DNA of 64,000 nucleotides from Penicillus capitatus. Taxonomy: Eukaryota > Plantae > Chlorophyta. Positions within the stretch are counted from its first letter, which is position 1. The number at the start of each line of letters is the position of its first letter. The translations under genes and the position numbers were made by a program. Under the pieces are notes generated by a model, which ran no database searches, had not been told where the DNA came from, and saw nothing but the letters and a program-made list of their open reading frames with translations. Shown here one piece after another: positions 628 to 38,909 of the stretch. Location of the stretch: positions 496,001-560,000 of the forward strand of contig OZ287695.1 in NCBI GenBank assembly GCA_965649825.1, in the 5' to 3' direction.

Positions 628-674
628 CGTCGTTATAGACAATGGGCGAAAGCCTGTCGCGTCAAACATCTCAC

Positions 675-770
675 AGCTCGAACGCAAAGCGGAAGCCTGC
701 TGCGTGGAAAACTCGCAGCTCGAACGCAAAGCGGAAGCCTGTTGCGTGGAAAACTCGCAGCTCGAACGCT
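675..770 (+). repeat. 42-bp tandem repeat, about 2.3 copies, just upstream of VWA paralog A
   Basis: agctcgaacgcaaagcggaagcctg(c/t)tgcgtggaaaactcgc starts at 675 and 717; a partial third unit starts at 759. Confidence 0.92.
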
Positions 771-10568: not shown

Positions 10569-10609
10569 ACACCGCGTCCTCACGCGTTTGCTCTCTCAAG
10601 CAAGCGCCA

Positions 10610-12650: not shown

Positions 12651-13112
12651 CCTCAGAAATGTAGGTACGTTCGGTGCGACACGAAATCCTGATCGATCGA
12701 TCGATCGGACGAGATGCGATGTGATGTGACGTCCACAGTCCAAGACAAAGACAACAAAGAAGAATGCGCAGTCATAGATACAAAGGAAGCCAAAAACGAA
12801 TAAGAGATGGTGTAAGAGTGCGTCACGGTAGTTGTTGAGTCCGTCATCATCATGACCATCATCAAGCTGTCGATTGAGAGCAATAAAAAATCGTGATCGA
12901 CTGGAACAGCATCACATCATATTCAAGCTTTAAATGTGCACGTATGTGTGAGAAGGAGAGACCATGTGTGCCTCATTAAGTCTTCTAAGGGAAAGGTCAA
13001 CAGGAAAGAGGGTATTCATGCAATACCTCCCTCCGATGGATCTCGACAACGCGTTTCTTTCCCACGGCAATGTAACAAAGAGCGGATCGATGGCGATACG
13101 TGGTGCTCCGTT

Positions 13113-15974: not shown

Positions 15975-16233
15975 TTTGTTGCGTCGGTCGGTTTGTTCGT
16001 TTGTTCAGCTATGGGTTGGTACGTTCGTCTATTGTGGACTGTCTGTATGGACGATGTGGCTGGACGGCGACGACGGTGTTGATAAGAATCGAAAATGAAA
16101 ACGCGAAAAACGCAGAGATAGATGCATGCGCGATTTCGGATAGACACCTTGCTGTTAACAAAATGCAAACGTCACATCATTCTCGCCAACGTTTGGTACG
16201 ACTAGATGGATGGCTGAACATCGAGACATGCGT

Positions 16234-18227
16234 TTAGAAATCGCCGAGATTCCACATATTGTCCGGGTCCATCTTTGACCAGGTCGATCGATCTTGCTCG
16301 AGCTCCGCTGGCGTCAGGAGGCATTCTTCGAGGGCGGATCGAATAGCAGGGAGGTGCGCCGCTTCGCCGATGACGACGATCTGCTGCTTGCGATCGCCAA
16401 AGACGGAATGCCAAGATGCGTCCGTTTCTGCCCAGAGCTCTTCGGGAAGCATCGACGAGCGCCACGTTTCGATCATATTGAACTGAACGGAGCGTCCGGC
16501 AGTAGACCAGTTGAGCTTGACATCGAAGTACGTGGCTATGTAGAAAAACCCTTTCGATCGGTATGCTTTGAGCATAAGGGAATCTTCTGCCATCATCAAT
16601 TTCTCATAGTTATCGTCATCGTCATCGTCCTCTTCTTTCTCTTCTTTCTCATCCTCCTCGTCGTCCTCATCTCCGTCCTCTTCATCGTCCTCATCTTCCT
16701 CCGTCGCTTCTTCGGTAGCTTCATCGTCCTCGTCGTCTTCAATGTCGCCAAAAATAAGTCGGTGGAGACGACCGGGATGAAAAGGCAGATGAGAGGTGAA
16801 GACGAAACTGCCGATGCCGAACTCTTCTGTTTCAGGGGTATGAGGCGAGATGAGCTCCGTGGCGAAGCCTTCGAATTCCGCTGCCTTCTTTGGGTCAAAC
16901 CGTCCGGTATGCATGACTTCGTTCAGGTCGATCTGGGCCCGAATGGAGGACAGCTGTTTCGCCGTTGGATTGAGATGCTTGAGCAGACCCTGGATCTTCT
17001 GAACCTCAGGCTTCGAGATGAGGTCACACTTATTGACGATCAGCGTGTCGGCGAATTCCACTTGCTCGATCAGGAGGTCCGTGATGCTACGGATGTCGCC
17101 ATCGTACGCAGACATATTGCGATCCTTCAACAGCTGGTTCTTCTTGATCTCTTGCATAAAGAGACTCCCATCGATCAGCGTCACCTACAGTGCACGTGCT
17201 GGTGGGGCAGAGGTGTCGGGGAAGGACCATGTTGTCGATTTTGAAGAATTCTTTCAGGGAACGCCCTTCGGCGTCTTGAGCAGCAAAGCTCGCTGCGACA
17301 GGCATCGGCTCACTGATGCCCGTCGCTTCGATCAGGATCGCGTCAAAGCGTTTTGCACAGAGCATCTTGGTCGCGGCCTAGTCACACTTTCTCACACATT
17401 GTGATCCGCGTGTCAAGTCGCTGACTTTGATGAGATCGCCGCGTAAAGTACAGCACACACAGCCGTTTGTGAGTTCTACCAGCTCCTCCTCTACTTCGGA
17501 AAAAGAGTGACTTTGCTGCACGAGATGGACATCGATATTGATTTCGGCCATGTCATTGACGAGCACGGCTATGCGCTGGCCATCAGCGGACTCAGAGAGC
17601 AAACGGGTCAGCAATGTCGTTTTCCCTGCGCCGAGGAATCCAGAGAGCACGACGACGTCGATGGGTTGCTCAACACCTGTCACATCAAACTCATACACAG
17701 ATTTTTTGCTGACGTGACCTGCAGCGCGGATCTCCTCGAGAGCATCGCGAATCAGTGTCGGATCCTCGTCATCATCATCAGGCGCCACGCGCATAGCGGC
17801 GATGCGAGATGTCATATAATCCCAAGTGGGATTCTTTGCGTCCACGGCGCGTCCTTGAGAGATGATTTTCTCTGCCTCGTCGAAGAGATTTTGCTGCACG
17901 AGTACCAGAGCTTGACGCTGATAGCCGCCACCCCATTCGGGTCGCATCTCCACCACACGCTTCGCATCGGCCAGCGATAAATCGTGCTTGCCTTGCAAAT
18001 CGTACGCCATCGACCGGTCGCACAAAATGCGCGTCACCTGTTCCGCGTCAACGCCAAGCGTCGTCGCCCGCTCCAACGCAGCCGAATACATCTCCACCGC
18101 CTCGTCCCATCGCTCTATTTCGCACAGCGCGTCACGCATCAGCCGAAAGGCGGTGCGAGGGTGAACCTGTGACGAAGAGAATGTCGCCTTTCTTCTTCAG
18201 CGACTCCAGAGAGTCGGCGTCGCTCAT
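16234..18227 (-). CDS. TPR-COG0523 (CobW/ZigA/YciC family) G3E GTPase metallochaperone, copy 1
   Basis: MSDADSLESLKKKGDILF..TPR; LSGFLGAGKTT, VNDMAEINID, GCVCCTLRGDL, EATGISEP, EQVEFAD, NKCD, CobW_C (RSKG, GDRKQQIVVIG). D/E-rich insert at about 16605-16745. Three introns. Confidence 0.92.
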
Positions 18228-18293
18228 GTTCCAGAAGGCCAAAGAAATGCGCAGCGCAATGGATCATTATGAAGCGACGTGGCCCACAAGACG

Positions 18294-18879
18294 ATGTTCG
18301 TCCTGCGTCGAACAGCAGGACGCTATGTTGCCCCATTCACCTCGCTTGTCTCCAGTCCTCTCTCGATCCCTCACGCCACTGCGCTCTGGCAAACGACTGG
18401 GGGGACACTCGGCGGCGGCGGCGGCGCCGAAGACAGGCGACACTTGTCTGAGATGACGCGCGAGGCGGTGCTCGGGTGGAGTCCCGTCGAGACCGTCGCC
18501 GTTACACTGGACCGTCTGCATCATGCGACGCAGCTGCCGTGGTGGGCGATGCTTTCGCTCACGGCTATCAGTCTGCGAGCCACGATGTTTCCCTTCACCA
18601 TCAAACAGGCGAGAGATGTGCGTCTCTTCTGTGCTCTGTATCCGATCTCCGCCGTGGACGCAGATCCAGTCGACGGGACCCACGATGAGCTGCATCTCTC
18701 AGGCGGTCAGAATTGTCCGCGCCAAGAAAAAGAGTGAGAAGAATACGAAATGGTCCTTGGTGGATGCAAAGAATGTGCTCGGTAAATTTCGAAAGCTGGC
18801 AAAGTACTCCGATGCACCCCATCCGGCTTGGGTGATCTGTGCCCCTCTCATCCAAGTACGCACCATCTGTGTTCACCTG
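18294..18879 (+). pseudogene. Disrupted OXA2-like insertase, copy 1, 5' part (the interrupted intron resumes at 34694-34752)
   Basis: Near-identical to 37296-37878. Interrupted in an intron by the LTR element; the 3' half is deleted. Confidence 0.9.
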
Positions 18880-18998
18880 TGTAGACCAAGCTTACCAAGG
18901 TAGTAACCAGCAGCTCCAAAAGTTGAACTGCAATCATTCTCTTACAACAGAATATCTGATGACAAGAATGAAGAAAACATTTATCTTTCGTCTCGACA
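18880..18998 (-). repeat. 3' LTR, internally deleted (119 bp)
   Basis: Matches both ends of 34334-34693 but lacks 242 bp between two gttacc sites. A purine-rich GGGGAGCG abuts it on the minus strand. Confidence 0.9.
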
Positions 18999-19099
18999 CG
19001 CTCCCCGAGTTGCGACTCCGACTCTTGGGAAACGAATTCTAACAAATCATTGCCGTGAACCCTGATCTTTCTGCCTTGCTTGCGGATATCGTAATGCCT

Positions 19100-21921
19100 G
19101 GATTCTAAGCATTGAAGAATGAGGTATGGCCCAGACCAAGGAGCTTGCAGCTTTGACAGGATTTTCCTAGGACGTTCGACAGAAGGACTTGTATTCCAGC
19201 TCTCAGTTTGGGCCCTTTTCTACGGACAGCTTCACGTTTTTCATGCCATTTGAGGCGTTCTGTACGTGTGTTTGCCCTAGCAAATTCCTTTCGTTTTGTC
19301 CATTCTGCAGGATCCAATAAATCGCCCTTGTAATCGAGGCCAAATCTGAGTTCTTTCGGGAAGCAACGCGTGACCCTGTGAACAGAGGAATTGATTGCGT
19401 CCTGAGATCTCTACACGAGCTGATTCCAAGGGTTGTGCGTTGCCATCTGTAAACGTCGAATCCTGCCCAAGAGCGTCTGAATCGTTCTCTCGACAAGACC
19501 GTTGGATGAGTGAGGATACGATGCGCTGAATCTGAGATCCATCCCACGATGCTTGCTCCAAGCGACGAAAACGGGAGAAGTGAATTGAGAACCAGAGTCC
19601 GCCACGACCATCTGAATCTTCCTATGTTTACGTATCCAATCGTCGAGGAGTTCCTCAACTCGTTGTCGTCTGGGAGAGCGCACTGTGCGTGTCTCCACCC
19701 ATCGGGAGAAGTAATCGACGGCAACCAGAATACATTTCGACGGAGCTCTGGTTTGTTGTGACAACGGTTCCAATACGTCGATATTAACCACGTCTGAGAC
19801 TTCACTGGCTTCTACGAATCCCAGATCTTCTCTGAATCTGCGTTTTGCACAATTGACAGGCCTCACAAGTCTTGGACACGTGCTCAGCAAATTTTTTTTG
19901 CCGCGGGACCATCCCACGGAGTCTTGGAGAGAGATAGTTTCAAGTTTGACGCCGAATAGTGTCCCCGCGCATGAGTGTCTTCTATTCACTCCCTGGCTTG
20001 CCCGTCAAGTTCCTGTTGAGCCGCCACTGGGTAGGCACAGACTTCAGACGACGACGCAGATTCGTTGCTTTCTTCATCGCTGTAGACATACGACTCTTGT
20101 AACGACGCTGTTTCACAGTGATCGTCCTCCATCTCACTCTCCATCTCACACTTGTTGTCTTCGCCGTCATACATCAAGAATTTCTGGCGCGAGAGAAGGT
20201 CCGCCAGTTGGTTTTCCGAGCCCGCTTGAAATCTTACTAAGTGATAATCTCTCAGGACCTCTTCCATTCTTCTCAGCATGAGCGTACTCTGGCTCTTCCA
20301 ATTCCACATTTTGGCAGACGCCCAGCTGTCTGTGAAAACGACAATCTGCCGTCCTAGGGCCAGGTGACGAAACGTTCTCAACGCTTGCGGCAGCGCATCC
20401 AATTCGGCTTCTGACGAGTGAGCCCACGGTTTCTTGTTCCTCCTGCTCATCATTGCGACAACGTTGCCGCTTTTGTCCATTAACGCCGCACCATAACCGG
20501 CAGCAGAGGCATCTACCACCATCTTCAACGACCCACTCCCATTCCAGTAACCAAGCTGTTGAAGTTGGTCTTGACAGGAGCGCAACAGACACTCCCAGAA
20601 TCGTCCAAACTCTGTCGTCTGAAATCTCTTGGCTTCCGCCTTTTTCCATGGTTCTAATGTGCGAAGTATGACGTCTCGACGCCAGGAATAACGATTCAAT
20701 TGTAACAACAGCCCTTCGACCGTTCTCAGATCCTTTGCACATTTTGGCTTGGGCAGATCGTTAAGCTTCCTTATCAAACCGTTGCTCGGTCTGATTCCTT
20801 CTGGGCATAGTTCGGCACCAAGGCACTCAACGGAATCGGTGCATCACTTGGATTTCTCGGCATTTAGCCACCACCCATCATGACCGAGCTCAGAGAAAAC
20901 AGTGTTTAAGTCCCGCAAGTGTTCCTCTGGGGTGTCTGATCCCAACATCAAATCACCAACATAGTAAAACAGAACACTAGATCTGTTCAGTTTTTTCACA
21001 ATTCGGGACAAAGTTATAGACAGAGCTTTTTGGAAATGTCCCATGCTCGATACCCAGCCAAAAAAGCATGTCTTGTATTGAAAGAATCGTGACTTGAAGA
21101 AAACCCCAAAAAAAGTCCGAATCTCTGGAGCCAGAGGCACCTGCATGAATCCCTTCCTCATATCGATGACAGACCAGACCGTCTTCTTCGGCATGTGTCC
21201 CAATAAACACATCCTGTCTATGGGAATTCCTTGCACCGAAACAGTCGCAGAATTCAGCGCTCGGAAGCTCATAACCACTCTTTTCTTGTTTCCTTTCTGT
21301 GGCACGGGTATGAGTGGCGTCAGGATGGTGGGAGGCCTTGCCACTTCTTCAACCGCACCGATCTCGACGAACTCCTGTATCTGGGCCTGAATCTGATCCT
21401 CCACGGCAGGTGCCAACGGACGGCATGGAATCGCTGAGCAGTCGACGTAATCTTTGAGTCCGAGATCGTCCACACAGTAGTGCTTCACACCTGGGAACTT
21501 CCTTTCGCACAGACGCGGGTATTGCCTCCAGAGGTCGTCCATCGACCGCTCTTCGTCCTCAGCATCATCGATGTCTGACACTTCGCCGTTTTCCTCTCGC
21601 GTTACTGTGTTCAGCTTCTGGCGACGCTGTCGTTCCAAAGCGTCTCTCGGTAAGAGACTCGACCCGCCGACTTTCTTCAGAACCACTTGCTCGTCTGCCT
21701 TGACTTGGAAGGCTGCCATCATGAATTTGCTTCCCAGCTGTTCAGGCCGGTCGCCTGGATTCCTCAGAGACATTTTGATCCTTTTTCCAGCTCCTTTAAT
21801 GCACGGCTCGATCATCACACTTCCTGCGTTGCCAGTGGGCATCAACGCGGCGTCTCTGTTCAAGATTCGACACGGTAGTTGGAATCTCACGGATGATCTG
21901 GGGCGAGAAAGGCGGACTTCC
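19100..21921 (-). pseudogene. Gypsy pol: RT, RNase H and integrase (frameshifted, with stops)
   Basis: RT VIDMRKGFMQVPL..FFG..YYVGDLML (YVDD changed to YVGD); RNase H VVDASAAGYGAAL..ELDAL..VFTDS; integrase NIDV..VDYFSRW..VADSGSQFTS..SNGLVER, and PWSGPY. Confidence 0.92.
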
Positions 21922-24194
21922 ATCTTTCCTATTCTCCGTACGGCACTTACGTTCCGCCCGCTAATTTCCCTTACTGAACGCCGGTGTCCGCACACGAGAA
22001 CAACGCACGATGCAGCCTTCCGGCTCGACGTCCGAAGGCCCTGGCACCGCCCCCGACACCGTGCGCACGGCGATAGCCCAAGCGGCCCACACGGTTCGGT
22101 ACCGACGCGATCTGCGCCGGTCCCCCGAGGTGCTCGCAGCTATGAGCAAGGACGAGCTCATACTGGTCAACGCCGCTGTCAAGGCCTGCTCCACTCAAGT
22201 CGCCGCCACCTTGGACTCCGCACAGCTCGTCGAGAAGATCAACGCCTACCCGACTGCCCACGAGCGTCGAGATGCCGAGCAGCTCCACCTCATTAGCCTA
22301 CACGAGCGCTCCAGAGAATCGCTTCTGCTGGCTCCCGAAAGGCCCATCTACGACACGAAATCCCCGGTGCCCTGTCTCTCGCAGACCGTTCGTTTCCAAG
22401 AGAAAGTTACTCCCTCAGATCTCCTGTCAATATTCACTGTTGTATTGGCTTCTTCATAAGGGTCATCATGAAGATGAAGGGAAGATGATGCGCGGAACAT
22501 AAGACGTCGCTGTCGCCGTTTGATAGGTCTGCTTGCTCCTCTTCGCCAATGTACGTCTCGGAAGGCCCGGGGTCACAAGGTCGTCGGAGCGAAGGCCACG
22601 AAGTCGATGCCTCGGTCCGCGGAGCTTTGCTAGGTGTTATAAAGTCCAACGTTGTGGACGATCTGCTCCGCGCCCCGCTGGAGGAGCTACGCGTGTTCCC
22701 CTCGACGGAACTGGTCGAGATCCTCCTGGAAAGTTGGCTATTGCGGTCCGTACGGAATATACGCGGGTGTACTGTCTTACTCGGTGTCGTCGTCATAGAG
22801 ACAGAGAAAGCCGAGATGAAAGGTTAACAACAACAAACAAAGGGCAAACAACACAGCGTATCCTGAGCCTCTTATTCAGTCTAGGCGATGTGACATTCTA
22901 GGCAGATGATTCATCTTACTTCTACGACCAAAGAAAAGCGTCCCTTGAAGCCCAAGGGTCCCTTCTGACATGACAGCCAGCATCCGTGTCAAAGAATGGC
23001 GCAATTTTGATGGAGCGTTGATGGGACGGTAATTTAATCAGTGGCATTTCTGTCACTTGGTGTTTCGTGCCTTTGGCCGCACGACGTGACCGTCGCCGCT
23101 GAGTCACGATGAGTAGGGATAAATCGCGATGACTAGGAGTGAGTTCTTGTGAAGTTTGCGCTGAAGTTCTTTAAAGCTTCTAGAATCTCATTGGGGACTC
23201 ATCCTGGAAATTCACATGTTTTCCCGCCATCGCGTCAGGGACCAAGTATTCAAGCAAGAGTCGGACACATAAAACATCTATCAGTTTACGTTTACCTCTA
23301 CGTCTGTGTCTACGAACACTTCACTCGTCAAAAACATCGGTTGTTCTTGCTGTAATAAAATTGTCTCTTGCCTGCACTTCTTGCTTGGTTCTCGACATCC
23401 TAGCCCTGCCTGGTGTCATCTTATTCTAAGACTTCCGTCGCTTGTGAGATGAGTCAACACGGAGACGATTCCCGGTCTCTCACTCCTCCCCCTGAAGTCT
23501 GAGAGCAATATGGAAGCGAAAGCGGCATCCATGTCAACGTTAGTAATATCTGGGACGAAGTGGAGAATGAGAAAGCCAGCAAGCAATCGTCACGCGTGAA
23601 CTTCAGCTAGACAGCCGAGTCCGGACTGGATGGCGAACCGCACAGGGAAACTGACGGGGATTCGACAGACTCTGGCACGACGCGAACGCGCCAACGCGTG
23701 TGCGGAGATAAAGGAACTGACTAGAGTCAAAGCTAAGACTGATTACATGGTGAGTCCAGTCGGTTAAGTACCCTCGGCACCCGCGGACCCCTGTCACGTC
23801 AGGAAACGGACAGCCTGTCCGGTCCGCAGGGGCCCCAACCGTTGTCCTCTACCCATCAGAAACCCTGTCCGCAATGTAGACATACATACTTAGACGAATA
23901 CATCAGAACAGTTCCCTTGTAAATACTCGGAATGACGTCAGTCCTCTCTTATGCCATCATCGTGCATGATGAGCCTTTAGCGCAACGAACGTCACCATCT
24001 GTTCAAACACATGACCCCTGTCTTCCAAGATATGCACATCGTCATGAGAATCTTAGCGACAGTTATATCGTTACAAGAGGCATGATAGCATCATGACGTA
24101 AGGCATGAATGACATCATGCATAGAAAGAATATAAAAAGTTGGTCTTCGTACAGAACAGAACTTTTAAGACTCTCCTCTACTTCGTTTCAAAAA

Positions 24195-24378
24195 CAAAGC
24201 TTCGCAGAAGTGAACGTCGTGCGGAAGCAGATGTTTCGGTTTTCCGAACCTTGAGTCTCGGCAGACGCGCGTGCCGTCAGCAACAGCGTGTGCAGCGTCG
24301 AGTTCGTCAGCGCGAAGAGAGATTTCTTCGAGAAGTATGCTTGCGCAGAAGACCGACGAAGCGCGAACTTTTTCCAAC
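24195..24378 (-). pseudogene. 5' fragment of the trypsin-ankyrin gene
   Basis: Homologous to 2715-2893. The ATG context gagaagATGttc has become gaaaaagttc, the intron acceptor is altered, and the copy is truncated before IVGG. Confidence 0.85.
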
Positions 24379-27066
24379 GCGAATGGCGTGTAGATGCAAA
24401 AACAGTCAACCGGTCCCGAGTCATCTGCTGTACCGAATGGATCTCGAGTCATTTCATACGTTAGACGGCGTAGCCCTTTCGACTATGTCTTGCCGTTCGT
24501 CTCGTTATCACAGAAAAAGCGTTTGAGTACTATCCAGGTCCGATAGGACCAAAACGCGCGAACGATCAACTAGACGCGGCGGCCAATCACTCGTTCTATC
24601 ATCAGCGGGTCACGTCATCTGTCCCATCGCGAATCACCGTCGGCACCAAAACCCTCAGTGTCATCTCATGATTCAATAATTCGTCCCTCTCAATGAAATC
24701 AAAGACTCCTCGCGCTTAAAACCGCACACCATAACTCAGAGACACAATCATTATTGTCATCATCGAGAACGCATTCGCGCGCATGACTACTTTCACTTTT
24801 TCGATCAATGAAGCGCTTCATTCGATCTCTGTGTGCTGCACTGCTTCCACGCATTCGTCGCACAACTTGACCATCAAGCAGTACTCAATCATGATATGCG
24901 CGGCTGTCTTCCTGGAACAAACGTGCCCGGCTGCACGAGCCATCATTCATATGATCATCCCCTGACGCTCGGAATCGCAAGAAACTCAAGCCAATCGCCT
25001 TCTTCGAGACGCATCGAATTGGGAGAAGAGGCAGCTGTCGGCAAGGGCGTTGTTGCTCCAGACTCTGGCTTAGCCTCCCCCAGGGGCGGTGAAAGAATCG
25101 GCCGATGCTATCGTGTCATGTCTGGATAGCTCCACCACACGTGATGTCACGCCAAAGACCGTACGCGGATGCATTCAAAAAACCACTAGTGCCACTCATC
25201 TGACGATTCCAGATAGCGTCTACAGAATGTCCTCTAACTAGATTCTTCACACGGATAGCAATTCTTGCAACTGAAGGTTATATACGCATGTACCGGATCT
25301 TCATCTGCGAAAAAAGTGAGAATCCACCTCTTTGTCTCATCATAATCCACCCCACTGCTTGCATCAACCGCACATCTGCACGTTCAGTTTGATCAGCCCG
25401 GGACAAAACCTGAGCGAATCTGAGTCGCTCAGTGATCTTCTCTGATGCTCTCCTGATGGAAGAGAGATCATCGCAAGAATTCGACGAAATCTGCAGTCAT
25501 TAATCACGGCAGAGAAGAAACACATGCCTGGCGCCGTATCTCACACACTTATTTCTAGGTCCCTCACAGAAGGAACGATGATTGCTGATCCATCGGTCCT
25601 TCAGCACTATCAGAACTCTTTGGAAACTTTCACTGGGCTGGCATGAAGTCCAAAACCCCTTTTCATTCCAGCAGTGTGACCTCTCACGTCCATTCCGATG
25701 CTTCAGCCAGAGGGTGTGTCTCGGCAGTGATCTGCACCAGCCGCCCAAAAGAAAGCACTTTTGGTTTACAGCTAGGGCAATACACGTCCAAGAATGCATG
25801 GAGGATGTGATCTTCAGTCGGCATAGGGCAAGGAAAGCGTGAGATTCTCCCAGTGTCCATTTAGATCAGATCACCCGGGATGGTCTTTCGCGTAGAAGAA
25901 AGATTTTTCTCGAGAGCTTCTCGCAGACAGCACCAGGTTTCGGGCAACGTCGAGCGCGTAGCGTGCCTGAAGACAGACAGCATGCTCCATGCTGCATCGA
26001 CGACACGGAGAGCAGACGTTGCGCCTACCATCGCCAGTCACATCACGGAATCTTCACGATGACGTCGGCATGTCTAAACAAAATCTGTTAGATTCTTTCG
26101 AAACAGGCGAACGAGAACCACGTTTATCGTGGTCCGTGCAGTCGATCCGAAAAAGCCACGGGATGCCCTTACGTAAGATATTGGTAAGCGCCTCTTCGTC
26201 GCAGAAAGGCACCTTCTGGGGTATAAATTGAAGAACGGAGAGCTCCGTTTGCCATTCCCGGGCTCTGTTCGGATTGCACGTGTTTTTCCGTGGTCGTCTG
26301 ACACGGTAAGCTTCTTGCGCGTTGAGATCGTGCTGTGATTCTTCGACTCGATAGGCTTCCGTGTTGCGAACGTGTCGTCAGATCTCCGACGCGACAGGCT
26401 TTCGCGCTCCGTCCATCTATAATGACGATGAAGCGTCTTTGTCGCATCTTTGTGTTGCTCGTTTTTGTCGTTTTGTCTGATGCAGACGAAGCCAACGAAG
26501 AACCGATTTCTAGTTGCAATCAGCAATCATGCACGAATACAAAGCTTGTCTATATGTACAAGAATTGCGGATGCGAAGGGATGGATTTAACAGCATTACT
26601 CGAAGTGAACGCAAGAAAGGAGAACAGCAAAGAACCTAGGGTGTCGTTGACGTCGCTCTTGGATGTATCTGGATCTATGTCGGAGGAGATGGACCTCTTG
26701 CACAGTACAAACAAGTTCCTGGTGGATAGCCTCAGCAGCCGTGCCGAGCCTCACAAATTTGGCAGCATCAAGTTCTCAACCTACGCCGAACCGTTAACGC
26801 CTCTGGAGCTCCTGACGCCCAGTTCGGCAAAAAGGGCCGATGAAATGATCGATAGCACTACATCAGGAGGCGGTACCGATCTTTTTGCCGGCATTGAGAT
26901 GGCCTTCGAGCAGCAGAAAGAAGACACAGGAAACGATGCAGATGTCCGCGCCGTGTTCATCTTTACGGATGGACTGATCGACACAGATAAAGGAATCACA
27001 GACGAAGACGAAATCATTAGAAGAATCGAAGCAATGGTTACAGACCGCCCAGACATAGCATTCTAC
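24195..27066. repeat. Inverted segmental duplication, arm 2 (pairs with 1-2893)
   Basis: See arm 1. Confidence 0.95.
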
Positions 27067-29832
27067 ACGTTCGTCTTAAGAACCAATGTGAACGACAAAC
27101 TGTTACGCCGCATTTCTAATGTCGGGAGAGGTACTTTTTCGGTTATCCTAAATGATGAACAAATGGCATGTGCATTCGGAAAAGCCATAGGAGGTAATTG
27201 CGTCTGCCCCTGTTTTCCCTGTTTTTGCTAAACTAGCGCGATTTCTTCCGTAGGTGTGGAGAGTGAGGTGGGGAAGGTCAAGTTTACGATCACTCCCGAA
27301 CCAGGGGTCATAATCAAGTCTGCGTTGCCAGACGAATTAGTCAGTGAAGCCGGTGACAGTACCATAGTCGTGGTAGACTTGAAAGACCTACAGAAAGAAG
27401 AACGAAGAAGCGCCGTCCTCAAAATCCATCTGGATAATGGTTGCGTCCTACCCGAACCTCTGAAGGTACAGGGAGAGTGCAAGGATACTGGTCTTCGCTG
27501 TGCCATTCAAGAGAACGTCGACGTGGATCTCCTCGAATTGGACAAAGATGCACCACCTGGATGCTCTGCAAACAATCAAGTGATCGCCGAAACGCTTCGT
27601 TATGAGGTGTATGAGCAGCGGTTGGACGAGGCAATAAAAGCAGCAGAAGCAAAAGACTATCTCGGGGCCGCAGACCTGCTGGACCGTCTTTTGTTTGATG
27701 TCGAAGATGCACAAATGGACAACGAGGAGGAATGGATGGTCAAGGCCAAAAAGGACATCAACCAACTGATAGATGACCTGAGAGGCATGACGAATCAATT
27801 GAATCCGGATGTCTTAATGCTTGATGATATGTATGCTGTCCGTGATTCCATCGTCAAGCAGAGGACAGGATCAACAAACGAAAACTTCGAAAGCGTTGGA
27901 TATGTCACGACGACCGCCAAAACGGCGATGATTACGTCAGCAAAGAGGCAAGTAGCACACATCATACCCGCCTCGCCTTTCACATTCTCGGTGAGCGAGG
28001 CAGTTTCTCAAAAGACGACAGACGGAGGATTGCATTATGTCGATGTCATGTATACCCTTGAGGCGCAGTCTATCAAGGAAGACCGACCGCCACTGTCTCT
28101 CACAGTCGCGGTTGATACATCGCAGTCGATGAGTGCCGATGCTATCAAGATCCTTGTGGACACATTGAAGCGCCTGGTTGAGTGGATCACTTCAAAGAAA
28201 GAGGCCAACGTCCGCCTTGGCGTCATCACATTCGGGGATACAGTTAAAGAACTGCTTGCCTTGTCCAAGCTCAGTGCAATCGACATTTCAGAAGTCGAGA
28301 AATCGTTCGATGCCATCCAAGCCAGTGGAACAGCGAAGATCGAAGAGGCTCTGACTAAGAGCATCAATCAACAGCGTCTCAAAGCGAGCTGCACTGGATA
28401 CAAGGCGGTATTTCTCCTGTCAAACAGCGCATCATCATCTTCCAGTGATTCCATCGTCAAGACCCTTCAAGCGCAGCTCGATGCATCAGATCCCGTGTAC
28501 GTGTACACATTTGCCTTGAAAGACTCTGATACTGTGCAAATGGGGGAGATCGCCGCAGCAGGAAACGGGCAGAAGTACATTCTGCAGTCGCCAAATGATA
28601 TTCCTTACAGCTTCGGCGACGCCATTGGTGGATTGATAGGTGTATCTGCCAAGTCCATCAAGGTCCAATTCACCCCTACCGATAAAGATGTTAAGATCGC
28701 CAGTGTCTTCCCTGGAGGGGAGCCTCAAGGACAACAAGGCCCCTTCAACGCTTCCACACTGAATGTGTTTGAGGAGGAGGAGATCAAGTTCCTGGTGTCT
28801 GTCTGTTTCCCCGAATCGAGCAGTCCCGCTTCATTACTGAGCATCTCGACATCTTATACCAATGTCTCCACATGCGGGATCGCCAACAGCGAAGTTGCTT
28901 CGATTGGTGCCGGCGAAAAATCGCCGACGACAATCGATCGACGACGTTCGGAGAGGGATGTCGCAAGCAAACTGAAGGAGGCCGCTGACGTATGCATGAA
29001 TGCTACAGATCTGGAAGTCATCAAGAATATAAGCAATAAGGCGTTATATATTGCCGATAAGGCAACAGAAACCGATTACAGAATCTCACTCGTCAGCGAC
29101 GTTGCAGATATCATTTTTGCCTTGCCCGATGTGAAGGACGGTACCAAATCCAGAAGCGATGTTTGTGCACAGTTAAACGCCCTGATCGATCTGTTGGAAT
29201 CGGAAAGATCGAAAGGCACCGGGAAAAACAACTTCTATATCTCCAAGTTCTATGACTCCGAGATTCGAAAGAAGAGTAGAGAGGAAATGGCTGAGGGAGT
29301 TGTCTCGACAACCGCGTGCAAAGAATGGACTTCAGCTGCCTCGCAGCTTCAAGCTCAGATCCGTGCCTGGAACGGAGATACAGATGCAACCAGTCCTTAC
29401 TGTCTGTACACCAAGTCTACCGAGCACTGTGGTGTAACATCAATGCATGATAAGATTGGCAGTATCTTTCAAAGCGATGTTACGGAAGAGCAGGACTCAG
29501 TGGCAGCGGCATTGATGCAGACGTTTACCCGAATTAAAGATGCCATTGGGCGTGATGACTTCTTAATGGCTATGAACGAAGCCTCTGCCGCCCTGCAACG
29601 TTTGAAGGAATTTCCTTGCAATCGTGAGCATGTCACTGACGCGTTTGCTTGGCATCTGATCGTAAGAAGCAAGGACCTGGTTGAATCTGTCCAAGCCAGA
29701 TGCAGCGAAGGACATGGGTCTGTGGCACAACAGCTCGATTTCATGGTCGACGAGGCAGTGAAAGACAAAGAGGTGAAGCCCTGGATGGAAACGGAAGGCT
29801 CCGCTTGGGGAGCGATCTCGTTTGCTTACTGA
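26428..29832 (+). CDS. Secreted double-VWA protein, paralog B (about 1110 aa, one intron at about 27193-27252)
   Basis: MKRLCRIFVLLVFVVLSDA signal; VWA1 LLDVSGSM..GGTDL..IFTDG; VWA2 AVDTSQSM..SGTAKI..FLLSNS. Each VWA is followed by a beta-rich and a helical segment. No TM segment. Confidence 0.92.
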
Positions 29833-31872
29833 AGCTTTTTTGAGTGGCTTAATGTGCACATTGCACGTGCTACAGCAGTTGGATGCGTTTTGGTTTTTTC
29901 TTTTCCCTGCATGAAACATCGGCGCTGTTTTGCCGGTCCTCAAGCTAACCTAATGCGTCCTGCTTTCCATTGCTGTCTGCTGTCGAATGGAAAGGGCCAT
30001 TGGTGTTATCAAGCCTCAACTCTTCGAGTGTTGAACACTCTTAGTAATCAAAGTCCAAATCATTGAGTAGAATTGCGTTTCTCTTCGCCTCCGATACGAC
30101 AACGTTATTCGCAACGATTCAAATGTCCAGCTTCTGATTCACTATAGCCTCTCAGACCAGAAGGAAGCTTGGTTTTATTATCCAACATCCATCCGGTGCG
30201 CGATTAGGACAGAAATGCTTCGCTTACAATCCGTCCTATTTCGAATTCTTCGCGAAGACGTCGCGGTCACACACTTCAGAGCCTCGAGATGGCGCGACAA
30301 TACACTTGTACAGTTGCAGGTTCACCAATTCCAAACGTCGTCCAGCATCACTCTCGAAAGTAAGTCGTTCAATCCGTCGTACGTCGTCCCACAGAGGAAA
30401 GTCGTCACCGCGGTGTCGACAGGAACGCCGATCCTCGCACGACTAGGCCTGATGCGGCGGCAGCTCGACTCGTACCCACGCTGCATTCTTCAAATCCCCA
30501 TCCAAAGTGATGATGGCTTCCATCGAACGATGCCATCGAGAATCTTCATTTTGTTTGTGCCGTGTTCCTTTCCAATGGCAGTCCATCATTAGTATTGTCG
30601 TCAATAATGTTCGGTGATGGACAATTACAGATCTCGATGGGCAAAAAATTGAATAACACGCGGTCTTGTCAACCTTTAGTGACTGACCTTTTAAAGTGTC
30701 TTCGAATTCTGTTTCCATGCGTTATATTTTACGTGCTTAGCTCTCCTGACGAGCCGTCGTCCACAAGTATCATTCTCGCCCTTGCCCAAGACCTCGAAAG
30801 AGTTCCGTGCAACCTGGCCACCTACTTCAACGTCATTCCGAAGGAGAACCAAGCGTCTTACAATCGAGCCCGCCGTTACCTCGACGAAATGCAGTCCTGC
30901 CTTCGGTTCCACAGCATCATGGCCCCGTACACACCTCTACCCGCAGAGAACACCCCAGTGCCCAGCGCCTCGACCCGCTCATACCGTGACGCCGCCCGCA
31001 AAGCCATGCCCCATGAGACACCCCAACCACTGACCCCCGCCCAAGTGCAGAGATCTACCCAGACACGAGCGATCCGGCAGCAAACCCAAGCGGTCAAGGC
31101 CCAGATCCGATGAGACGAACGCAGTTTCCAGCTCTGTCCAGTGACCCTGAAGGGAGACCGTCCTTCGTTCCGTCAACTCGGCATCAGCCTAGAACGGGCG
31201 CTGAAGATCACGAACCTGAAAGAGTATGTGGAAGACATCCGATCTGATCACGGCGGCAGATATTACGTGCAAATCCGAACAGATCTGGTCAAGCAGTTCG
31301 AAAGATCGCTCGACTGCTGCCTAGAATGCGCCGGTGCCACATGGGAATTGGAGCTCAACGACATCGGAACCTTCACGGTCAATAACTCGTACCTGTCGCC
31401 CGCGAAAGACAAGATCCCAGTAGTCATCAGTAACGTCGACACAGACATCGACCCAGAAGCAGCTATCACAGCCATCACAGAACAGAACACAGCCTGCTGG
31501 AAGATACCGGCAGCAGAACTCGAAGACTCGCACTTCGCCGCCCCGTACCGATTGAATCGCTGGAAACGCGATTCCTCAGGACAGTCCCTTCCAAAATGGA
31601 CACCGAGCAAGAACTTGAAAGTCTTCATATCGAAGACACTTCACGAGCAACTTCTTGGAGAACACAAGGCCCCGTTTGCCACCCTGGACTACATGATACT
31701 GCCAATCTGCCCGTTCGCCCGATTTCCCAGTTTCCCTCGCGGAAACACCTGATTGTTTTCGATTGGTTCAATGTGTTGGACACAATGATTGTTACACTCA
31801 ATGTACAGATGCACTCCTAATCTTATCAAAAAGGAGTTGTAGAAGCAATTAAATTAAAAAAGGCGGACTTCC

Positions 31873-33452
31873 CCAGAGATAATAAAATAAGCGTTCCTTC
31901 TCTCCTAGGCTGAGTTGCTCTACGTTCGTCTTCTTGAATGTAAACCACAGACTCTATCAGTTCTGTACACGTTTGGTCAATGAAATGGTCTGTACAGTTG
32001 TCTTCATCAGGCCCTACTGATGGTCCTCCGCTTCTCGGGCCTGAGCTTGCTGGCAGAGGCGGTCGTTTGACTTCACACAATGAATGCATCTTTCCGATCC
32101 ATCCGGCAACTTGACAGTGATCGTGCACCTGCTCCAGTCGACCAATGCTTCCATCTTTGCGGGAGCTAACGGCCCCAGAATCACTTGTCGAGCGCTGTCG
32201 AGAACGTCGAAATCAATTTGGCACAATGCCGGAGAGGATCCAAGCTGCACCTCAAGAGTGACCGTTCGCAAACTCGTTTCCACGGAGCCGTTGAATACTC
32301 TCACCTTTTTCTTCACCGATTCATCAACGAACTACCCTTGACGAGATGCCAGCTTCAGCGGCATCACATTAAGTTCCGCTCCCGTGTCAATCGGACATTT
32401 TCGACGAATCACATCGCTTGCATCAGCAGCCAGGCCACACTTCAACTGCAATTGCTCGTCGGGACTTCCCAAGTCAACCTCGATGACTTGATCGAGCTTC
32501 TTCTTTGGCAGACTCTCCACAAACGGCGCTTCCGTCTTTCGAGACTTTCGCCCCTTCTTCGTTCTTCTTCTGATCATTCAGACACAGCCAGCAATCGGCA
32601 CGACGATGACCTGGTTTCCCGCAATAGTAGCAAACAATAGGTGATCCTTGTCTGCCCCACGTCTTCCTCTTCCTCCGAAAGTTCGGAACCCTGAACGATT
32701 TCGGCTTAAAGATCCGGAGGGCTTACCAGGAGGGCTTCCTTGCCCTTGCGCATTTGATGTACGTTGTCGTGTTTGTCGACGGACAACGGGTTAACGACGA
32801 AGGCGTATGGATTACAAAGACTGTTGTAACAATTAATCGTTCGGATTTATACGCGTCAAATGTCACACACATCAACGCGTCCCGTGGCAGCTGCACGAAA
32901 GTGGACAGCTGTTCACTGACAACGCCGCCGGCCACAGCTCCCGTGTGCTTGTCTTCTTGATCATCCCTGTCGTTGGGATCTTGATCTTAGCTTCTGCAGC
33001 TCTCAATGAGACGCTTTTGTGGCTCTCAGATCCTCTTTGTAAAGTCTTCTTCCACTTTAGATATCTCTTCGCTTCTGCCGCTATCGTTTCAATCGACAAT
33101 TCATCGACGTCGTAATTGTCTTCCAGTCTATTCCTCAGTCGTGAAGGGAGCTTCGCCAGCAAAATCTCTCTTGCCCTCGGAAGCAGAACGGACGTCAAAA
33201 CCGTCTTCATCGTCTGGTGGTATCGTACTACGAAAGAGTGGCAGCTTCATCTCGCTCAAAGCTGTACTTGAGCAGATGTTTTTCTGCGTCCAAATCGACT
33301 CCAACTTCAATAATCATTGAGCCCAGATAAGACTTGATCTCAAGCCACATGGTCTCGAGCGTCTGTTCTTCTTCCTTCGTCGTTAACTTACGGGCCCGAC
33401 GGCAGGCTGCTCATGCGACGCCGAACGATGGATTCGATTTCTGCGGACATGG
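31873..33452 (-). pseudogene. Gypsy gag and aspartic protease (decayed)
   Basis: Zinc knuckle CYYCGKPGHRRADC near 32600-32640; protease IDTGAELNVM near 32370; several stops and frameshifts. Confidence 0.88.
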
Positions 33453-33569
33453 TGTGAAACCCAACTCGTGATCAGGACGAATAAAGGGGGAATGAGAGAG
33501 ACGATTGGCGGCAAGAGAATAAAGGAGGAAGCTGAACAGTCGTATCGTATCTTCCAGCGTTTACCTGTG

Positions 33570-34253
33570 TCAAACGTTTACCAATCTGTAAGCGAGAGTT
33601 TGTCTGGGCGTCGAAGCGTGTCCGTCGTCATGGGCCCGAGACGCGATTTCACACATGGCAGCCCCGGTTCCTCTAGATTGATCGAACGATTCCAGAAGAG
33701 TAAGGATTCTCTTGCCGATGAATCTGTGTGTTATTTCAAGTCGACCCAGTAATCTCTCGTGTGGCTTCTGCGTCCACACTGTAACATTCTTCAGATCGTC
33801 CCTTTTGATGGTCAACGGTGACTGCGAATACGCTCGCGCGTTCGAGTCGGATATTCCGCCTGCTGTGTCTATTACTTTTGATTGTGCTGTCCAAAAAGGG
33901 CCACACAGCAGATCGTCAATCCTCGTCAAGACGATTGGCGATGTCCATACGTATATCAGCCATAGCCACCTCGCCTGTCCGGGGTACTCTCTATTAAACA
34001 AGGACTCACAAAACGCGATCGCCGGATTAAGGCAACGAGGCAGCAGAGTAATGCCTCGCGCCCAACGACTTTTCGACGTCTCGACGGCTCGGTCTGCAGC
34101 TTGACCTAACCTTCCATCCCAAAAAGCCTGCGAAAACGTAGCGTCCACAACGGCTGCCTGCTCTCTCGTGAGGGGACGTTGAAATTCGCCGCCTGGAAAA
34201 AGCTTGCGGTTCCTCACAAATGCGACGTTCTCAGCCTTCGGCTCCACTCCCAT
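33570..34253 (-). CDS. Extra ORF of unknown function between the PBS and gag (about 227 aa from ATG 34253)
   Basis: Uninterrupted frame inside the element; no recognisable motif. Confidence 0.4.
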   Translation of the reverse strand: MGVEPKAENVAFVRNRKLFPGGEFQRPLTREQAAVVDATFSQAFWDGRLGQAADRAVETSKSRWARGITLLPRCLNPAIAFCESLFNREYPGQARWLWLIYVWTSPIVLTRIDDLLCGPFWTAQSKVIDTAGGISDSNARAYSQSPLTIKRDDLKNVTVWTQKPHERLLGRLEITHRFIGKRILTLLESFDQSRGTGAAMCEIASRAHDDGHASTPRQTLAYRLVNV

Positions 34254-34321
34254 GGAGTTCAACGCGAACCCCAGGACGACGGCGACTGTAGCGAGTCCGG
34301 CCGCAGTCGCGTGTGAGCCTC

Positions 34322-34333
34322 GCTCCGAAACCA
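34322..34333 (-). promoter_or_regulatory. Primer-binding site, variant of the tRNA-iMet type
   Basis: TGGTTTCGGAGC directly after the LTR CA, versus the canonical TGGTATCAGAGC (2 mismatches). Confidence 0.75.
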
Positions 34334-34693
34334 TGTAGACCAAGGTTACCGTCACCGCGGAAGTGCCGCGCCAAACGATAACAGCGGAAGACTTGTTACA
34401 GTGTTCGGAGAAGGTCTCGAAAGGTTCAACTTGTCCATTACATACTCGCGTGGTGACGCGACATGTCTAGGCAGTTGAGTCATCCAACCTCCAGAACCAG
34501 AGAAGAGGGCCTCGGATGACTCAACCAGCACCCCCCTAAGCTGTGAGCCATTCAACAACGAGGCAGAGTCCCATCGCCCGGCGACAGTTACCAAGGTAGT
34601 AACCAGCATCTCCAAAAGTTGAACTGCAATCATTCTCTTACACCAGAATGTCTGACGACAAGAATGAATAAACATTTATCTTTCGTCTCGACA
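34334..34693 (-). repeat. 5' LTR (360 bp)
   Basis: TG...CA ends; homologous to 18880-18998. Confidence 0.92.
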
Positions 34694-34752
34694 ATCTGTC
34701 ACCTCACAGGCAGATTCTGTCACTCCAGATTCCTGCCTTTCTCACATGTGTG

Positions 34753-35160
34753 GTCTATAGTGTGAGCAGATATACCCAGCGATCAACGAAATCTTACTGT
34801 ACACGGCAGTCCTGTCGAATGCAGTCCTGTAAAGGGAGGGAGGGGGTCAGTCGATGGTAGACACGGCAGGGTAAGGTGGCGGCCTACCTGCATCGGCGGT
34901 ATGGTGATGATTGTTTTTCTTCTTTTCTTCGATGTCGTTCAAAACGTGATCGATATCCGAAACGTGCCCTTGGTTCAAACACTTGAGGACGGCGGCGACG
35001 TGCGGCATGACGTGACGATTGAGCTCCTGGACATTGAGAGGCTCTTCCCCCTGCAGATTCACGTAATCGACCAAGAAGGCAAACGCCACGACGCTACGGC
35101 GCTTTGCGGTACGGGTGCCCAAAATTTGGTGAAGAGGTACTAGAGGCAGGACTGCAAGGT
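34753..35160 (-). pseudogene. Internal ORC5 fragment (copy 1)
   Basis: Matches 39364-39769; joined to the OXA2 remnant by a deletion of about 1.43 kb. Confidence 0.9.
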
Positions 35161-35245
35161 TTGCTGTTAACAAAATGCAAACGTCACATCATTCCCGCCA
35201 ACGTTTGGTACGACTGGATGTTTGGCTGAACATCGAGACATGCGT

Positions 35246-37229
35246 TTAGAAATCGCCAAGATTCCAGATATCGTGCGGGTCCATCTTTGACCAGGTCGAT
35301 CGATCTTGCTCGAGCTCCGCTGGCGTCAGGAGGCATTCTTCGAGGGCGGATCGAATAGCAGGGAGATGCGCCGCTTCGCCGATGACGACGATCTGCTGCT
35401 TGCGATCGCCAAAGACGGAATGCCAAGATGCGTCCGTTTCTGCCCAGAGCTCTTCTGGAAGCATCGACGAGCGCCATGTTTCGATCATATCGAATTGAAC
35501 GGAGCGTCCGGCAGTGGACCAGTTGAGCTTGGCATCGAAGTACGTGGCTAAGTAGAAAAAACCTTTAGATCGGTATGCTTTGAGCATAAGGGAGTCTTCT
35601 GCCATCGTCAATTTCTCATCGTCCCCGTCCTCTTCTTTCTCATCTTCCTCCATCGCTTCTCCATCCTCCTCGTCGTCCTCGTCTCCGTCCTCTTCCTCAT
35701 CTTCCTCCATCGCTTCTCCATCCTCCTCGTCGTCCTTGTCGTCTTCAATGTCGCCAAAAAAGAGTCGGTGGAGACGACCGGGATGAAAAGGCAGATGAGA
35801 GGTGAAGACAAAGCTGCCGATGCCGAACTCTTCGGTTTCAGGGGTATGAGGCGAGATGAGCTCCGTGGCAAAGCCTTGGAATTCCTCTGCCTTCTTTGGG
35901 TCAAACCGTCCGGTATGCATGACTTCGTTCAGGTCGATCTGGGCCCGAATGGAGGACAGCTGTTTCGCCGTTGGATTGAGATGCTTGAGCAGACCCTGGA
36001 TCTTCTGAACCTCAGGCTTCGAGATGAGGTCACACTTATTGACGATCAGCGTGTCGGCGAATTCCACTTGCTCGATCAGGAGGTCCGTGATGCTACGGAT
36101 GTCGCCATCGTACGCAGACATATTGCGATCCTTCAACAGCTGGTTCTTCTTGATCTCTTGCATAAAGAGACTCCCATCGATCAGCGTCACCTACAGTGCA
36201 CGTGCTGGTGGGGCAGAGGTGTTGTGGATGGACCATGTTGTCGATTTTGAAGAATTTTTTCAGGGAACGCCCTTCGGCGTCTTGAGCAGCAAAGCTCGCT
36301 GCGACAGGCATCGGCTCACTGATGCCCGTCGCTTCGATCAGGATCATGTCAAAGCGTTTTGCACAGAGCATCTTGGTCGCGGCCTAGTCACACTTTCTCG
36401 CACATTGTGATCCGCGTGTCAAGTCGCAGACTTTGATGAGATCTCCGCGTAAAGTACAGCACACGCAGCCGTTGGTGAGTTCTACCAGCTCCTCCTCTAC
36501 TTCGGAAAAAGAGTGACGTTGCTGCACGAGATGGACATCGATGTTGATTTCGGCCATGTCATTGACGAGCACGGCCATGCGCTGGCCATCGGTGGCCTCA
36601 GAGAGCAAACGGGTCAGCAATGTCGTTTTCCCTGCGCCGAGGAATCCGGAGAGCACGACGACCTCGATGGGCTTCTCAACACCTGTCACATCAAACTCAT
36701 ACACACAGATCCTTTGATGACGTGACCTGCAGCGCGGATCTCCTCGAGAGCATCGCGAATCAGTGTCGGATCCTCGTCATCAGGCGCCGCGCGCATATCG
36801 GCGATGCGAGATGTCATATCATCCCAAGTGGGATTCTTAGCGTCGACGGCGCGTCCTTGAGAGATGATCTTCTCTGCCTCGTCGAAGAGATTTTGCTGCA
36901 TGAGTACCAGAGCTTGACGCTGATAGCCGCCACCCCATTCGGGTCGCGTCTCCACGACGCGCTTCGCGTCGACCAGCGCATAATCGTGCTTGCTTTGCAT
37001 ATCGTACGCCATCGACCGGTCGCACAAAATTCGCGCCACCTGTTCCGCCTCAACGCCAAGCGTCGTCGCCCGATCCAGCGCAGCCGAATACATCTCCACC
37101 GCCTCGTCCCATCGCTCTATTCCGCACAGCGCGTCACGCATCGGCTGAAAGGCGGCGCGAGGGTGAACCTTTGACGAAGAGAATGTCGCCTTTCTTCTTC
37201 AGCGTCTCCAGAGAGTCGGCGGCGCTCAT
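35246..37229 (-). CDS. TPR-COG0523 GTPase metallochaperone, copy 2
   Basis: Same exon structure and motifs as copy 1, all frames open. The acidic insert is rearranged (39-bp unit repeated 57 bp apart at about 35640-35735). Confidence 0.92.
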
Positions 37230-37295
37230 GTTCCAGAAGGCCAAAGAAATGCGCAGCGCAATGGATCATTATGAAGCGACGTGGCCCACAAGACG

Positions 37296-38880: not shown

Positions 38881-38909
38881 TCTTCCCTTCCTTCCATTAC
38901 AGCACGGCA

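Follow-up and report, generated by a model that had tools for sequence, protein, structure and literature searches.

We analyzed a 64,000-nt stretch of DNA from Penicillus capitatus (contig OZ287695.1, positions 496,001 to 560,000; the whole stretch is referred to as the window), in which a short intron of an Oxa1-like gene is occupied by three insertions lying one inside the other. The outermost is a Ty3/Gypsy-type retrotransposon; it is interrupted by a retroposon derived from a long interspersed nuclear element (LINE), and this in turn is interrupted by an 8,347-bp segment of host DNA, the cargo, which bears an intact gene for a protein with two VWA domains. Such a three-level nest of 15.8 kb had been predicted, and its boundaries were confirmed to the base, since for every level there is a relative in which the sequence runs on uninterrupted. 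The nest was probably built by three successive insertions, in the order Gypsy, retroposon, cargo. The window has the traits of eukaryotic DNA, with short GT..AG introns, a long terminal repeat (LTR) retrotransposon and a LINE-type retroposon. Comparison loci are designated L001-L009 and feature coordinates are collected in Table 1.

The same arrangement is found on a second contig. Contig ctg340412 (ERZ25074695; L007/L008; 613 kb) aligns to window positions 10844-41747 and is ~0.2% different. The first 21 kb contain 43 substitutions and two 1-nt gaps; the second 20.6 kb, which overlap these, show 22 mismatches and a few small gaps. These differences are clustered and natural-looking, and in an ABC-transporter gene (10610-12223) 13 of the 15 are synonymous. 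Window positions 1-10899 are 100% identical to ctg313902 (L009), a 19 kb contig from that assembly. By this pattern of differences, the window and ctg340412 are probably natural variants, i.e. two haplotypes. All junctions and the empty site described below are identical in the two contigs; the nest is thus present in both versions, and the sharing of junctions by a contig that differs at ~0.2% of positions argues against an assembly artefact.

Gypsy and retroposon insertions in a duplicated intron

Self-BLAST of the window placed the nest within a tandem segmental duplication. Positions 16149-18880 match 35161-37879 at 95.0% identity, 34696-34752 pairs with 37876-37932, and 34752-35160 pairs with 39364-39769; taken as a whole, the duplication (16149-18880 plus 34696-35160 versus 35161-39769) is a block of CobW/TPR plus Oxa1-like sequence whose copies are 95-98% identical. 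Copy 2 is continuous, whereas copy 1 is split by 15.8 kb between 18879 and 34694. In both copies the minus strand encodes a CobW/TPR protein and the plus strand bears the start of the Oxa1-like gene; the Pfam matches within the block are cobW, CobW_C and 60KD_IMP. Conceptual splicing of the Oxa1-like gene of copy 2 gave a 60KD_IMP match of 37.1 bits (cutoff 35) and C-terminal TPR repeats; its 54-nt intron, which reads ...gttcACCTGtcacctcacag..., links ...APLIQ in frame to IPAFLTCVISIRRM.... Copy 1 lacks 1,431 bp of copy 2 (37933-39363), a gap that takes away most of the Oxa1-like coding sequence. Since just 24 nt of the next exon are left ahead of this gap, copy 1 of the gene is a truncated, non-working duplicate, regardless of the insertion. 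Thus, the host intron, originally attributed to an OXA2 gene, does belong to an Oxa1-like gene with a 60KD_IMP domain, but to a copy that is itself incomplete.

The element in this intron lies on the minus strand, spans 18880-34693 and measures 5,863 bp without its insert. The intron of copy 1 runs from ...gttcACCTG into TGTAGACC...CGACA and continues behind the element with ATCTG tcacctcacag, so that the insertion is flanked by a 5-bp target duplication with one mismatch (ACCTG/ATCTG). The same five bases occur once, as ACCTG, at the empty site of the tandem paralog (37874-37878), and both the predicted target duplication and the prediction that removal of the element restores the intron seen intact near 37873 were therefore correct. 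The LTR is 119 bp long and has TG...CA ends: read in the minus-strand orientation it starts TGTCGAG, and the 3' LTR ends TCTACA. By self-BLAST, the direct repeats 18892-18998 and 34588-34693 are 94.4% identical. Pfam matches on the minus strand follow one another in the order reverse transcriptase (RT), RNase H, integrase (RVT_1 20844-21995, RT_RNaseH 19986-20777, rve 19411-19989). The copy is degenerate, with pol scattered over several frames and, judged against L001, with a deletion of the inner ~12 bp of the 5' LTR and the start of the primer-binding site. Pfam models matched nowhere in the gag/protease region, even with E values allowed to reach 1. A protease is suggested here just by its expected position upstream of RT and by a D-S-A motif within 32014-32316, and the label PR (protease) that had been given to this region is not supported by Pfam.

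L001, a relative of the Gypsy element without interruption that lies on a separate contig of this ENA assembly, is 87% identical to the window copy over the 3' part of pol and 75-89% identical over the 5' internal part (L001 7779-9907). This relative has a single recognisable LTR. It lies inside a direct repeat of at least 7.2 kb (1-7203 versus 13657-20856, period 13.66 kb, 93.7% identical), which bears genes with faint Chlam_PMP/beta-helix matches.

The second layer is a retroposon on the plus strand, 1.6 kb long without cargo and 9,937 bp with it (21922-31858). An exact 14-mer, AAAGGCGGACTTCC, flanks it on both sides. By our own estimate, chance alone would produce ~0.2 exact 14-mer pairs per 11 kb region, and a 14-mer repeat is by itself weak evidence. 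The insertion is, however, firmly placed by the uninterrupted L001, which bears the target once (GGAAATCCGCCTTT): the window up to 21921 aligns to the 9894 side of L001 and the window from 31859 aligns to L001 9907, with an overlap of exactly 14 bases (9894-9907). The retroposon block ends ...AATTAAATTAAAA directly ahead of the duplication, its 3' end is A-rich, and its conserved 3' hairpin lies at 31814-31848; the 3' part of its open reading frame (ORF) contains one stop (31111-31113). It had been proposed that removing the retroposon rejoins the PR and RT regions as ISG/EVRLSRPRSS. This peptide join crosses frames and is not supported: in the window the frame is closed upstream of the junction, and the L001 frame through the target reads LGKSAFLAPRSSVRFQLP. 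Compared with L001, the window Gypsy has also lost one base directly after the retroposon target.

Fourteen proteins of the collection, each from an ENA assembly, are related to the C-terminal ORF of the retroposon, and we compared the window copy with the loci of five relatives (L002-L006). Family elements are 1.6-2.2 kb long and have one ORF of ~340-500 codons. Pfam searches of the ORFs detected neither RT nor endonuclease in any of the six copies, which, together with the small size, led us to reject an autonomous LINE. Thus, the LINE-like element of the original prediction keeps its 14-bp duplication and its boundaries, but it belongs to a non-autonomous family with ORF1 only. All six copies share the 3' hairpin motif CACTCCTGATCTTnnCAAAAAGGAGnTGTAnAAGCAA, ~35 nt long and almost invariant, followed by an A-rich tail, although the ORFs from the two assemblies are just ~58% identical. 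Since the motif does not vary, it displays no covariation; it may serve for recognition by the RT of a partner element. Target duplications follow the tail in the window (14 bp), L002 (15 bp), L004 (13 bp), L005 (12 bp) and L006 (13 bp), and none was found around the L003 copy.

An exhaustive profile search with the retroposon ORF returned 59 cluster representatives. P0046 and P0053 (686 aa each) run on into an endonuclease domain typical of LINE ORF2 (PF14529, E ~1e-13); Exo_endo_phos_2 occupies residues 404-525 of P0046 and P0053 is arranged likewise, while P0072 has a weak zinc knuckle. The profile of the retroposon ORF matched residues 8-255 of P0046 with an hhalign probability of 98.9% (E 1.9e-17). 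Because the family profile matches a protein that continues into a LINE endonuclease domain, the retroposon is a LINE derivative in which an ORF1-type gene and the presumed 3' recognition end were kept and ORF2 was lost. Scans of JGI metagenomes for the 3' motif and for the ORF were both empty. The retroposon copies in L003 (3118-14715) and L005 (2871-8945) adjoin Gypsy-type protease/RT/integrase sequences, which could reflect a target preference or merely transposon-rich islands. PPR and pheophorbide-a-oxygenase (PaO) genes occur in the L005 and L006 loci, which come from the related assembly, and gyrase-type genes in L002; these genes may point to an alga with plastids.

The cargo and its VWA gene

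The innermost layer splits the retroposon ORF between ...SDLLS and ALAQDL.... L002 is contiguous at this site: window positions 21935-22429 align with L002 up to 9770, and positions 30778-31755 align from 9771. Thus, L001 and L002 both join at exactly the points that had been predicted for uninterrupted family members, and the proposed 8.3 kb gene-bearing cargo is real. The pre-insertion sequence ...CTCCTGTCA/GCCCTTGCC... (TCA/GCC) is wholly kept around the cargo, with zero target bases lost, and at the cargo ends neither a target duplication nor terminal repeats, direct or inverted, were found. None of the other five retroposon copies carries cargo. We rejected a processed retrocopy or LINE transduction, as the gene in the cargo retains its intron, there is no A-tail at the cargo 3' end (30776) and the ends are not duplicated. 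In the left part of the cargo, 22546-22985 and 23657-23870 recur in diverged form at a number of L002 sites (11739-12090, 12912-13100, 13285-13497, 16254-16775 and 17468-17722); these patches in the left 1.8 kb represent an uncharacterised low-copy repeat.

The cargo gene (26422-29832, plus strand) is of the adhesin type and has an intact ORF for a product of 1,116 aa with a signal-peptide-like N-terminus. The product has two PF00092 (VWA) matches, and the DxSxS signature of the metal ion-dependent adhesion site (MIDAS) is present in both, as DVSGS and DTSQS. A second VWA gene, at locus A, runs off the start of the window, and its complete version was recovered on the 19 kb public contig ctg313902. 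Self-BLAST aligned the two loci in inverted orientation, 725-2893 with 26368-24195 at 86% and 88-737 with 26973-26314 at 71-78%. The intron position is common to both paralogs (54 nt in locus A, 60 nt in the cargo gene). Homology to locus A spans 24195-30589; it takes in the gene together with its 2.2 kb upstream block and a further 0.75 kb on the downstream side, but neither the left 1.76 kb nor the final 0.19 kb of the cargo. At the protein level the two genes are 57% identical, with a synonymous divergence (dS) of ~0.50 and a ratio of nonsynonymous to synonymous divergence (dN/dS) of ~0.65. Because this divergence compares with 94.4% identity between the LTRs and 95% between the tandem copies, the cargo gene is much older than the nest. 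Locus A was likewise ruled out as the donor of the cargo, being too diverged (86% in non-coding sequence, dS ~0.5). We therefore read the cargo gene as an old, fast-evolving paralog that would have been brought in as DNA, with its intron and upstream region, and not been created by the nest; the claim that the nest hosts a new intact gene is right about its intactness but not about its novelty.

The upstream block is 86% identical between the two loci while synonymous sites of the gene have diverged to dS ~0.5, and it contains no long ORF and no Rfam match. This 2.2 kb block may be constrained or may have been homogenised by conversion. Next to locus A lies a gene for a trypsin-family serine protease (2684-3918, plus strand), so that two genes for probably secreted proteins stand side by side.

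Under neutral drift by substitutions only, the probability (P) that a 3.35 kb ORF escapes disruption is ~0.02 at 2.8% divergence and 0.22 at 1%. Because the cargo gene is open in spite of the P of ~0.02 at 2.8% neutral divergence, while the Gypsy element and the retroposon around it are broken, it would be either under selection or a very recent arrival, and it is probably still functional. Between the two contig versions, a one-base indel lies within the intron of the cargo gene and nine substitutions are crowded into 260 bp of the first VWA domain (exon 1, 26788-27048), where one codon has two, five further codons have one replacement each and two are synonymous. There are no substitutions in the cargo gene beyond this stretch. 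A conversion tract from locus A was considered for the cluster, but the mixed pattern does not support it. At 90% identity, the cluster of the cargo VWA product has one member, and a search for donor homologs with the spliced VWA protein returned just the product of the window itself and two remote VWA proteins.

Table 1. Coordinates of the nest, its host block and the VWA loci in the window.
Feature	Position	Strand	Basis or remark
Locus A	1..2893	-	5' end of second VWA gene, running off window start, plus 2.2 kb upstream block
Copy 1, left part	16149..18879	.	95.0% identical to 35161-37879
CobW/TPR gene in left part of copy 1	within 16149..18879	-	Pfam
Oxa1-like 5' exons, copy 1	from ~18279	+	Pfam, self-BLAST
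First 24 nt of 54-nt intron, copy 1	18856-18879	+	comparison with copy 2
Gypsy target duplication, left, ACCTG	18875..18879	.	
Gypsy 3' LTR, 119 bp, TG...CA	18880..18998	-	aligns to L001 LTR at 7679-7795
Gypsy pol, 3' part	19411..21921	-	integrase 19411-19989, RNase H 19986-20777, RT 20844-21921
Retroposon target duplication, left, AAAGGCGGACTTCC	21908..21921	.	
Retroposon 5' part: 5' untranslated region and N-terminal part of single ORF	21922..22429	+	93.7% identical to L002 9276-9770
Cargo	22430..30776	+	L002 contiguous; 24195-30589 homologous to locus A
Cargo upstream block	24195..26368	+	86% identical to locus A block
Cargo gene exon 1	26422-27193	+	
Cargo gene intron	27194-27253		60 nt, GT..AG, in-frame stop
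Cargo gene exon 2	27254-29832	+	
Retroposon 3' part: remaining ORF, hairpin, A-rich tail	30777..31858	+	91.7% identical to L002 9771-10741
Retroposon target duplication, right	31859..31872	.	
Gypsy 5' internal part: gag-like ORFs, pol N-terminal region	31873..34586	-	L001 identity
Gypsy 5' LTR	34587..34693	-	94.4% identical to 18892-18998
Gypsy target duplication, right, ATCTG	34694..34698	.	1 mismatch
Rest of copy 1	34699..35160	.	self-BLAST
Last 30 nt of intron, copy 1	34699-34728		
24-nt exon stub, copy 1	34729-34752		followed by sequence matching 39364-39769
Copy 2 with complete Oxa1-like gene	35161..39769	.	intact intron 37855-37908, empty Gypsy site 37874-37878

Rfam and tRNA scans of the window were both empty. 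Copy 2 contains a short tandem repeat at 35616-35740 (35616-35683 versus 35676-35740, 91% identity), within which the two contig versions show a 6-nt length difference at 35688. Dispersed repeats occur downstream of the duplication at 39999-44915 (39999-40139 versus 44417-44554; 40702-40739 versus 44878-44915), and a further one pairs 40770-40931 with 42008-42169.

Order of events and competing explanations

Since the retroposon lies inside the Gypsy element, topology indicates that the Gypsy insertion came first. The original prediction held that the order of all events can be read directly; this is so for these two layers, whereas the timing of the cargo is deduced from the retained intron and from there being no second copy. 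We propose that a ~4.6 kb CobW/Oxa1-like block was first duplicated in tandem. A compact 5.9 kb Ty3/Gypsy-type element would then have entered the 54-nt intron of copy 1, in minus-strand orientation and with duplication of 5 bp, and a 1.6 kb non-autonomous retroposon would have entered Gypsy pol upstream of RT, with duplication of 14 bp, presumably through target-primed reverse transcription with machinery borrowed from an unseen autonomous LINE. We regard the Gypsy and retroposon insertions themselves as demonstrated. For the third and last step, we infer that the retroposon ORF was cleanly broken and that 8,347 bp of chromosomal DNA were inserted there, most likely by end-joining repair of a double-strand break, a route that is favored because the join is clean and free of duplications. 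A late arrival of the cargo is favored because its same-strand intron is unspliced, no source copy was seen and the five other family members are short and empty. The cargo gene would accordingly be a paralog moved or copied to its present site.

A number of points weigh against this history. Clean end-joining of 8.3 kb with zero target loss is not the most typical outcome of repair, and neither microhomology nor filler that would mark a repair pathway was seen at the cargo joins. No donor locus or empty donor site for the cargo was found; furthermore, the VWA protein search missed the exon-1 product of the record itself, so that the single-copy negative is only a moderate one. Neither Pfam nor PDB sequences nor fold comparison gave a match for the retroposon ORF itself – the AlphaFold2 model of the protein was poor (predicted local distance difference test, pLDDT, 52), and Foldseek against the PDB and a PDB profile search gave nothing significant – and no autonomous partner LINE was found in the loci compared. 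The age of the Gypsy LTRs is based on just 107 aligned bases. Finally, the presence of one 14-bp duplication pair around retroposon plus cargo also fits a transposition of the two as one unit.

In a transposition of this kind, the cargo would have entered a retroposon elsewhere, and the retroposon promoter would then have driven transcription of the whole 9.9 kb composite, which retrotransposed into the Gypsy element. Not only does the single duplication pair bound all 9,937 bp, but the VWA gene and the retroposon also lie on the same strand, and the gene is far older than the nest, so that its capture could precede the jump. However, the 60-nt GT..AG intron of this same-strand gene is still there, a second gene copy of at least 90% identity is absent from the collection, and the five other members all lack cargo and are 5-6 times shorter than the composite. 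On balance we consider the composite unlikely to have moved as such, and we are a little more doubtful still that an ORF1-only retroposon took an 8.3 kb segment with a whole intron-bearing gene and its promoter region to a new site via RNA. If this were true, it would represent a LINE-driven way to duplicate whole regulated genes in a microbial eukaryote.

The base-perfect join without duplication or loss is also what homology-directed copying gives, and the cargo could have been copied from another cargo-bearing family copy by ectopic gene conversion or a double crossover, the retroposon family being multi-copy and the retroposon arms of 0.5 kb and 1.1 kb supplying homology. Since the template copy should persist, yet was not found in the protein search, and since such copying would still leave the first entry of the cargo into a retroposon to be explained, we regard it as quite improbable.

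A clean insertion without target duplication might moreover point to the 8.3 kb segment as a mobile element in its own right, one that has escaped recognition and makes no duplication, such as a Helitron, a Crypton or similar, and small patches of its left 1.8 kb do recur in L002. Helitrons have 5'-TC ... CTRR-3' ends and insert between A and T. The cargo ends are ATATTCAC and CATTCTC in the target TCA/GCC, and they thus fit neither the Helitron termini nor its target. In addition, the segment lacks terminal repeats and is single-copy, the cargo ORFs tested against Pfam gave no transposase, helicase or recombinase match, and homology to locus A stops inside the segment (24195, 30589) and not at its ends; a mobile element is accordingly a very improbable explanation. 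Least credible of all is a chimeric assembly join of repeats: the junctions do lie in repeated families and the sequence was treated as a metagenome-assembly product, but the halves of the split elements complement each other to the base and come with target duplications, neither of which a repeat mis-join gives, and the ~0.2%-different contig, whose differences in a neighbouring gene are mostly synonymous, has the same structure. Successive insertion of Gypsy element, retroposon and cargo hence remains the history that we prefer.

Relation to known systems

The nest is a clean worked example, in which each layer has an uninterrupted relative and all boundaries are known to the base. It contains a member of a previously undescribed family of ORF1-only, LINE-derived retroposons with a conserved 3' hairpin, and it suggests that dead transposon sequence can take in a rapidly evolving gene, here one for a secreted two-VWA-domain protein, along with the region upstream of it, while the gene stays open. 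Were the gene expressed at this site, transposon-rich DNA would in this small instance have served as a landing pad for surface-protein genes that evolve rapidly. The elements of the nest belong to known kinds, and knowledge of how such elements work is unchanged; only one feature is unusual, namely that the innermost layer is a whole host gene that arrived cleanly, by a mechanism that we infer.

Like Ty3/Gypsy elements (Metaviridae) in general, the outer element has TG..CA LTRs, a 5-bp target duplication and the order RT, RNase H, integrase. Unlike typical members, it has very short LTRs (119 bp), is small (5.9 kb) and shows no Pfam match for protease or gag, and in contrast to live Ty3/Gypsy elements it is a dead copy with frameshifts and a deleted primer-binding site.

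For the retroposon, the closest parallel is a derivative of the mammalian LINE L1, whose ORF1p comprises a coiled coil, an RRM and a C-terminal domain (CTD). HAL1 ('half-L1') is described as a mammalian non-autonomous L1 derivative that encodes ORF1p only (PMC5753468, citing Smit 1999 and Bao & Jurka 2010). As in HAL1, so far as the cited account describes it, the retroposon keeps an ORF1-type gene and both the 5' and the 3' end, lacks ORF2, and is multi-copy with target duplications. It differs from HAL1 as portrayed there in belonging to an unrelated lineage, with no detectable similarity to L1 ORF1p in sequence or fold (as judged with the model of pLDDT 52), and in ending in a conserved hairpin, as in LINE pairs of the stringent type with short interspersed nuclear elements (SINEs).

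The cargo invites comparison with two ways of displacing host sequence. As in LINE-mediated retrocopies and 3' transduction, host sequence is here bounded by target duplications of the LINE type and an A-rich tail; in contrast to these, the cargo is internal to the retroposon and not downstream of it, and it retains an intron and 4 kb of upstream DNA without a poly(A) of its own. Fragments captured at chromosomal breaks are the other comparison, and 8.3 kb is far above the size expected for them. Insertion of genomic fragments at Cas9 breaks has been reported (PMC9237045). The cargo resembles such fragments, as that report presents them, in being chromosomal DNA inserted without target duplication or transposon termini, and differs from those presented there in that it bears a whole gene with its upstream region and that the target lost no base.

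Nested transposon insertions as such are commonplace (PMC6911290). As in the nested LTR retrotransposons of plant intergenic regions, a later element splits an earlier one and brings its own target duplications, and the order can be read from the arrangement. Unlike those plant nests, however, this one sits in the compact, gene-dense genome of a microbial eukaryote, inside a 54-nt intron, and its innermost layer is host DNA.

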